A DNA stretch of 64,000 nt, from NCBI GenBank assembly GCA_013265495.1, contig MU061578.1, positions 3,357,308 to 3,421,307 on the forward strand, given 5' to 3'. This DNA comes from Vicugna vicugna. Its lineage: Eukaryota. The notes beneath the pieces are model-generated. The model had not been told where the DNA came from, did no database searches, and worked only from the letters and a program-made list of their open reading frames with translations. The translations under genes were made by a program, and so were the position numbers. This document shows positions 36,796-38,286 of the stretch, piece by piece (positions within the stretch are counted from its first letter, which is position 1; each line of letters opens with the position of its first letter).

Positions 36796-38286
36796 TTACT
36801 CTTTCCGGAAAATTAGGCACTTGTTGGCTGGCATGTCCACCTATAGGAGACACTTTGGCTGGAGAAGCTGCCTCTGGTCCCCAGGGAGGCTGCACCTGAC
36901 CATAGTCCTCTCCACCTACCATCCTCTCCAGGAGCAGGCCACTAGCCTGGCCCAGGTCTTCCAAAAGGGCTGTGTCCCGCAGCCCCCACTCTGGATTTCT
37001 GCAGGAGAGAAGGAGGTGGAGTCGTGGCCTGGGGGTCGCTCAGCCCACCTGCCCCCCAAGCCAAGCCCCCTACCCACCCAGCTCTGACCTGCATCTGAGG
37101 GTCAGGTTAAAGTCCACATTACTCTGAGGAGAAATCTTCCCATTGATGGCATAGGGCTGTGGAGACGGGGTACACAACTCTGCCTGCCGCCCACTGCCCC
37201 AGGGTCAGCCATCCTGTCATCCACTGGGCAGACTTGCAAGCTGGCACCGACAGGATGGAAAGGACACACCCCTCCCTGCCCCCCAGAGGCGGGATAGCTG
37301 AGGACCAGCTACTGAGCCAAGGGGGTGCAGGGAGACTGGCAGGTGGGGTGGGATGGAGGAGGGTATTGGAGAGAGGCAGGCCTGGGTGTGTTACAGTGAT
37401 GACAGGTAGCTGGGGAAAAGAGAGAATAAGGGAGTCCAGAAAGGCAAGAACAGCCAAGGATGGCTAGGGTGGTCCTGCCAGGGCAAGCCCCACTCTGGCA
37501 GGGGCACTCACCCCATAGGTGATGAGCAGCGCCTTGGGTTTGAGCAGGTGTCCTGATGCTCTGAAAAGCCCCTGTGGAGAGGGGAGGCAGGACAGCAGTG
37601 AGGAACTTTCCTCAGACCCCTAAAAGAGCCCTGGGCCCGCGCTGGAGGCTCAGCCTGACTTCCCCGGCCTGAGTGCCCCGTCTCTGATATGGGGCAAACC
37701 TGGCACCCCACTCCCTCCCAGTGCAGGGGGAGGAATGCGCATGGAGCAGGTGGGTAGCCCCTGGGTAGTTCACCCACACTTCCTCAGAGCATCTCAGGGG
37801 GCTGATGTGGATCATGTTGATGCAGAATAGCAGGTCCAGGGATTGCGGCAGGATCCCGCCCCACTGCTCCCAATCCCAGGTCACGTCCAGGTACAGAGGG
37901 GCTTTCACGTTGGGCAGCTCATGGGCCTGAGTGGTGGCTGCAATGCTGTGGAAAGGCAGGCCGTGGGTGGGGGTGGCCTCCGCAGCCATTTCTGAGCCCC
38001 TGCAACCCGGCTTGGGAGAGGCTTAGAAGGGTCACAAAAGCCTATGGAGCCAGGGGCAGCGGGATGGGGCCCGGTCTGCCATTGCACCTGTCCAAGCCGC
38101 GCTGTCCACGTCGGACGGCTGCCACTCGGCGTAGGGGAAGGCCCGCGCGAAGTGGGCCGCGTGCTGGCCGGAGCCCGAGGCCACCTCGAGTACGCGAACG
38201 CCGCGCTGCGCCGAGTCCACATACTGCCGCAGCACGCTCAGGATGGGATCCTTGTTCCGCTCCGCGGCCGCCGCCATCAGCATCAT
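36796..38286 (-). pseudogene. METTL26: Methyltransferase-like 26 (C16orf13, DUF938 family), frameshifted in this assembly; pseudogene or assembly error
   Basis: Exons (minus strand): 38286/38283-38088 ([15 protein letters not shown]...[11 protein letters not shown]...WQPSDVD), 37945-37783/37780, 37571-37512 (GLFRASGHLLKPKALLITYG), 37156-37089 ([16 protein letters not shown]...), 36998-36920 ([12 protein letters not shown]...), 36840-36796 ([14 protein letters not shown]). Gene identity is secure; a 1-nt deletion near 38104 breaks the frame. Confidence 0.9.

Follow-up and report, generated by a model that had tools for sequence, protein, structure and literature searches.

The 64-kb stretch of DNA analysed here (the window) carries a six-exon gene on its minus strand (36796-38283), which belongs to the METTL26/C16orf13 family (Pfam DUF938, PF06080). 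Two pieces of the gene match PF06080 with scores above the gathering cut-off of 27 (exon 1 piece: 83.2 bits; exon 2 ORF: 56.8 bits). For comparison, a protein from Camelus (P0313) matches PF06080 over its full length with 294 bits. The position of the gene and its six-exon layout also agree with those of METTL26 (197/163/60/68/79/48 nt) and, together with the domain scores, identify it as the METTL26 ortholog. An uninterrupted full-length frame, as would be expected for an ortholog, is not found in the window, where exon 1 is 196 nt long. The features of the locus are listed in Table 1.

The exons were compared with those from six other species (dromedary, wild Bactrian camel, pig, cow, orca and a canid) and, in addition, with those from zebra. 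The coding exons of the other species were recovered by exact protein-to-genome matching, and those of the window were extracted by script. In zebra, exon 1 is 206 nt long, due to an N-terminal extension. The readable METTL26 residues of the window are 96% identical to METTL26 from Camelus.

Table 1. Features of the METTL26 locus in the window. Positions are those of the window; a slash in a sequence (here and in the text) marks a splice junction.
Feature	Position	Strand	Remarks
METTL26 exon 1	38088..38283	-	196 nt vs 197; CDS from ATG 38283; encodes SAM-binding motif
METTL26 exon 2	37783..37945	-	163 nt, as in the six other species; ancestral frame open
METTL26 exon 3	37512..37571	-	60 nt, as in the six other species; A126S at an invariant residue
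METTL26 exon 4	37089..37156	-	68 nt, as in the six other species; D157N at an invariant residue
METTL26 exon 5	36920..36998	-	79 nt, as in the six other species; zero replacement changes
METTL26 exon 6	36796..36840	-	45 nt including TAA vs 48 nt in the other species
Polyadenylation signal AATAAA of METTL26	36651..36656	-	read directly
Site of the 1-nt deletion	38103..38104	-	ancestral GAC CAG now GAC-AG; from alignment against two Camelus loci
Premature TGA after canonical exon 1-exon 2 splice	37905..37907	-	ORF 37905..38222
Remnant of the intron-2 donor	37778..37782	-	7-nt deletion took ancestral GTGTGTG; now GAG/gaa
Internal exon-1 donor CGGCA/GTATGT	38223..38224	-	used by dromedary isoform X3 (P0001) and a bat isoform (P0041)
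Downstream acceptor cattgcag/CC	37938..37939	-	AG 8 nt into exon 2; identical in Camelus
Promoter CpG island, retained	38284..38683	-	GC 0.60 and CpG observed/expected 1.10, measured with exon 1

METTL26 is arranged tail-to-tail with WFIKKN1 (ORF at 34748-36241, plus strand). The two Camelus loci that were compared and aligned to the window are L001, from a dromedary assembly, and L002, from a wild Bactrian camel assembly. In both, the neighbor of METTL26 has domain families identical to those in the window. The genes converge in the window, and the long exon ORF of WFIKKN1 ends about 400 nt from the polyadenylation signal of METTL26. On the same strand as METTL26, about 630 nt upstream of its start codon, ARAGORN predicts a tRNA-Gly(CCC) gene (38917-38987, minus strand). 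Three sequences (dromedary isoform X3, the hippo protein P0042 and the WFIKKN1 exon ORF of the window) had no match on record by exact look-up.

Conservation of METTL26 extends from monotremes and lizards to placental mammals. According to two papers (PMC8662637; PMC13707005), neither its substrate nor its function is known. When the intact Camelus protein is modelled with AlphaFold, it shows a class I SAM-methyltransferase fold (pLDDT 90). The Foldseek matches of this model are small-molecule O-, C- and N-methyltransferases, with TM scores of 0.7-0.8 when normalised to the query. Among the nearest in fold are MfnG (7ux6), SibL (4qvg) and RedM (8tjj). A GxGxG-type motif I is a shared feature, but their sequence identity to METTL26 from Camelus is only 15-22%. 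No solved structure was found for any member of DUF938.

A frameshift in exon 1 had been proposed by the sequence-only reading, with one C missing at about position 38104 and an exon of 196 nt instead of 197 nt. The missing base is evident both by direct reading and by alignment to Camelus. The minus strand reads GAC GTG GAC AG CGC GGC TTG GAC AG/gt (38112-38086). In the alignment, the window has a one-base gap opposite the second C of Camelus GGACCAGCGC. Both Camelus loci contain this C, as they carry GGACCAG and read GGACCAGCGCTGCCTGGACAG/GT. The length of exon 1 is as had been claimed, being 196 nt in the window (38283-38088) and 197 nt in six other mammals. Codon 61 is CAG in all seven other species (the two Camelus, pig, cow, orca, zebra and a canid). 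The window thus lacks a base that is retained in Camelus and in the outgroups, which makes this a derived inactivating mutation in a constitutive exon.

When exon 1 is joined to exon 2 by canonical splicing, the shifted frame runs into a premature TGA, which is located 122 nt upstream of the exon 2-exon 3 junction. Four exon junctions are downstream of this stop codon, as had been stated, and the ORF list and the exon coordinates agree on this point. The canonical mRNA of the window is predicted to encode about 78 residues, which are native only in the first 60. By the usual rule, a stop codon more than 50 nt upstream of an exon junction leads to nonsense-mediated decay (NMD). The earlier claim that the premature stop conforms to this rule holds for its predicted position, and the canonical mRNA would probably be degraded. 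The first in-frame ATG 3' of the premature stop is the codon for Met110 in exon 2. The frame that was turned into the ancestral one by the deletion is open across 38042-38359 (minus strand), from exon 1 into the 5' region, and has no ATG there.

The deletion affects Gln61, which is the first residue of a helix (residues 61-73) and directly follows strand beta2 (residues 53-58). Asp58, at the end of beta2, presumably occupies the usual position of the acidic cofactor-binding residue in class I methyltransferases. The predicted product of the canonical mRNA cannot combine motif I with the C-terminal two thirds of the protein.

Two further lesions had been reported, a displaced intron-2 donor and a deletion in the MPANN motif, and both are found in the alignment to Camelus. 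(i) The intron-2 donor is intact in both Camelus loci (GAG/GTGTGTG). The donor string in the window is gaagtgtggg, compared to GTGTGT or GTCTGT in other species. A GT is available 3 nt downstream of the old donor (37779-37778). It is in frame, and its use would add a Glu. (ii) In exon 6, a 3-nt deletion (within 36820-36828) removed one AAC codon (Asn) of MPANNK, while both Camelus loci keep AACAAC. The deletion is in frame and, according to the AlphaFold model of the Camelus protein, affects a turn between the last two strands. One residue of a conserved Asn pair is lost (among 30 amniotes, N195 is conserved in at least 90% and N196 is invariant). Because of the in-frame donor GT and the in-frame loss of Asn, the statement that three of the six exons carry lesions overstates the damage. 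All three lesions are present, but two of them keep the frame. Among the three indels, judged by their predicted effects, only the 1-nt deletion is unambiguously inactivating.

These lesions had been interpreted as a possible gene loss in camelids. This cannot be upheld for the family as a whole. Camelus has the intact 204-aa METTL26, with the C of codon 61, the intron-2 donor and both Asn codons in place, so that only the window's own lineage, which is not Camelus, is affected by the loss. The canonical Camelus protein is P0313, the representative of a UniRef group with three entries from the genus Camelus; Camelus dromedarius and C. ferus are named in its record. P0313 was found by listing members of the 90%-identity cluster. 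Among the matches listed, homology searches retrieved no METTL26 protein from the window's lineage; the 90%-identity cluster has 17 further named members beyond those listed, and an alpaca protein could be among them. JGI metagenome contigs were scanned for both alleles of the deletion site, without a match. The window is about 98% identical to the Camelus loci, introns included, and it diverges from dromedary by 2.17% in introns and by 2.87% upstream. The animal must therefore be a camelid from outside Camelus. PMC12127551 lists seven living camelid species, and as the New World camelids are the only living tribe besides that of Camelus, the window is assigned to the alpaca/llama type.

Two isoforms of dromedary METTL26 (X1, 215 aa; X3, 169 aa, P0001) read through intron 5 to a stop codon at its acceptor. 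Intron 5 from dromedary (L001:4374-4454) has a 2-nt insertion relative to the window and to C. ferus.

Selection was analysed on a codon alignment of the window (with N at the missing base), the two Camelus, pig, cow, orca, zebra and a canid. There are seven replacements relative to Camelus, all of them derived in the window (R16S, P24S, C63G, L106F, T119S, A126S and D157N). By outgroup comparison, all 12 coding substitutions (7 nonsynonymous, 5 synonymous) and three of three indels occurred on the window branch, and the fitted length of the Camelus stem is 0. A branch test of dN/dS, which had been suggested together with the frameshift, was run with our own implementation of a GY94 branch model. 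Omega is 0.35 on the window branch and 0.083 in the background. Two omegas are preferred over one (2ΔlnL 5.6, p=0.018), and omega = 1 is not rejected for the window branch (p=0.095; profile 95% interval about 0.11-1.2), with the test resting on 12 substitutions only. Purifying selection is thus relaxed on the window branch, on small counts.

An alignment of 30 amniote sequences shows no variation at T119, A126 and D157 and at least 90% conservation at P24 and C63. All five residues are replaced in the window. Three of its changes are private and fall in columns that are otherwise invariant, even though it is 96% identical to its nearest neighbor. This count is reached only by lizard, marsupial and other long-branch sequences. 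The divergence from dromedary is 1.96% in the CDS, compared to the above-mentioned value for introns. There are 3 indel events in 611 coding nt versus 2 in 877 intronic nt. Small as these counts are, all measures agree in pointing to a constraint that was probably weakened or absent over a good part of the window branch. If the branch omega is split into a share evolving at 0.083 and a share evolving at 1, the neutral share would come to about 30% of the branch. With the camel-llama split at 16.3 Myr (PMC12127551), this would correspond to a neutral span of roughly 5 Myr, the interval extending from very recent to nearly the whole branch.

The sequencing runs that were analysed bear on the reality and the frequency of the deletion. 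The 14 DNA runs (12 samples, 6 studies, 3 organism labels) contain 175 of 175 sampled 31-mers from positions 36700-38400 of the window. Further runs with one of the organism labels contain 45 of 45 words from the exon 1-exon 2 stretch. Among the 1671 possible words, 30 span the deletion, and about one in ten words was sampled. The probability that the site was sampled is about 0.96 (about 4% that it was missed). These word shares suggest that the deletion is fixed or nearly fixed, bearing in mind that the presence of words in contigs shows the presence of an allele, not the absence of another, and that heterozygotes would also hold all words. The loss had been considered recent. It postdates the split from Camelus but is otherwise bounded only loosely, as preceding the separation of the organism labels A, B and C.

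The deletion might be real but polymorphic, with intact alleles persisting in New World camelids. Such a segregating loss-of-function allele would be compatible with the word data, given that contigs report presence only, and it would fit the light decay of METTL26. We consider it unlikely. According to the word shares, the deleted form is present in 12 of 12 DNA samples, which cover three organism labels, and the accompanying lesions and replacements indicate a long relaxation rather than a young allele.

Another possibility is that the frameshift is bypassed by splicing. Use of the AG located 8 nt into exon 2 would remove 8 nt, which together with the missing base sums up to -9 nt, so that the frame is restored and QRCLDSIAA is replaced by SAAWTA. 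Near the exon 1/exon 2 boundary, no other donor or acceptor was found that restores the frame. The resulting protein of about 200 aa would keep the SAM motif and the C-terminal two thirds, and might be functional. Not only does the arithmetic work, but the other two indels also keep the frame (the +3 donor of intron 2 would add only one Glu), exons 2-6 are devoid of stop codons, the CpG island is intact and the point estimate of omega is below 1. We nevertheless regard a functional rescue as quite unlikely. The AG is identical in Camelus, so that nothing has evolved to favor its use. Splicing normally selects the first AG that follows the polypyrimidine tract, and the +8 AG is located behind this normal AG. 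The rewritten segment is nearly invariant among 30 amniotes and opens a high-confidence predicted helix beside the cofactor site. In addition, three invariant residues elsewhere are replaced, which argues against a maintained function. It is tempting to speculate that compensation occurs at the level of RNA, the +8 AG and the new +3 donor jointly yielding a remodelled but active METTL26 with a rewritten start of helix 61-73. This is highly doubtful. If true, an exonic 1-nt deletion would have been rescued naturally by an acceptor shift.

It is very improbable that the missing C is an assembly or consensus error, with an intact gene in the animal. An artefact would be conceivable for a single base within a CC dinucleotide, in a GC-rich exon and a stretch with 60% GC, the more so as exons 2-6 are open and this base rests on the assembly and on indirect word shares. 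However, the 14 DNA runs hold every sampled word of the 1.7-kb gene, with a chance of only about 4% that the site was missed. Moreover, an error of one base does not explain why two other indels and seven replacements at conserved positions, all of them derived, occur in this copy.

An internal donor in exon 1 would splice out the frameshift (exon 1a has 59 nt, the same phase as 197), leaving an ORF of about 157 aa but also removing residues 21-65, including SAM motif I. That only this short isoform matters, in a candidate noncatalytic role, is barely credible: the junction is annotated in P0001 and P0041, from species with intact genes, but the isoform is a predicted one with a hypothetical function, it cannot be a methyltransferase without beta1, motif I and beta2, and replacements at invariant residues fall into the retained part.

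The promoter had been described as CpG-rich, which is borne out by its observed/expected ratio (Table 1), and the island is kept. In the homologous 596 nt, the window has 60 CpG compared to 63-65 in Camelus, which rules out an erosion of the CpG island. With this uneroded promoter, transcription of METTL26 may persist. Just 5' of the ancestral start codon (38284-38290, minus strand), two substitutions relative to Camelus changed ACGACGATG to ACTATGATG. They remove two CpGs and create a second in-frame ATG (38286).

RNA runs were considered as a sign of transcription in the window's lineage but had to be discarded. Their word shares are 0.42-0.44 on exon 1-intron 1-exon 2, uniformly across many studies, and 0.23-0.45 on the whole gene across six RNA runs (0.23 in X20). 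The corresponding expectations are 0.40 and 0.18 for spliced mRNA from Camelus but 0.65 and 0.36 for spliced mRNA of the window type, and the observed shares fit the former. The runs with shares that fit METTL26 mRNA from Old World camels are X19, X20 and X25-X36 (organism D) as well as X15-X18 and X37. In camels METTL26 seems to be expressed well, and very small transcriptome assemblies are no exception. Two small runs from organism C, which may be of DNA or of RNA, contain the exon 1-exon 2 stretch completely, intron included.

We conclude, with a probability of about 0.72 and from one copy in a 64-kb window, that New World camelids alone have lost METTL26, either as a unitary pseudogene or at least through a loss-of-function allele that is fixed or nearly so. 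Loss of one C in the codon for Gln61 shifts the frame of all that follows the SAM-binding N-terminus. The canonical mRNA would end at the TGA in exon 2, more than 50 nt upstream of four junctions, where NMD is expected, and a functional product would probably be absent. On the window branch selection was relaxed, be it before or after the frameshift. The branch gained its seven replacements (three of them at residues invariant in amniotes) and lost the intron-2 donor and one Asn codon, with its coding divergence coming near to that of the introns. Several observations count against this reading: exons 2-6 contain no stop codon in the ancestral frame, the CpG island has been kept, the point estimate of the branch omega is below 1, there is only one unambiguous lesion and a frame-restoring acceptor exists.

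The copy in the window resides at the same locus beside WFIKKN1 as the canonical 204-aa mammalian METTL26 and has the same six-exon layout. It differs from the canonical form by the frameshift at codon 61, the lost intron-2 donor, one Asn fewer and the replacement of T119, A126 and D157. It resembles other mammalian unitary pseudogenes in being a conserved single-copy gene at its ancestral position, with a small disabling indel, a relaxed branch and intact sister orthologs. An example of a lineage-specific pseudogene is TAS2R16, which has a frameshift in Old World camels (PMC12127551). The loss of METTL26 in the window's lineage is not shared by Camelus. Decay of the gene is slight: a single lesion clearly disables it, and its CpG island is preserved. 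In the literature searched, no report of this METTL26 loss was found, and none that links METTL26 to camelids. The pattern looks like an ordinary lineage-specific gene loss, without an evident link to a trait.

Before a gene loss is called "camelid", both tribes need to be checked. Should alpaca, llama, guanaco and vicuna indeed be without METTL26 while camels keep it, they would be viable natural knockouts with a close intact comparator. The substrate of METTL26 could then be traced by comparing the two groups for methylated proteins, RNAs or metabolites.
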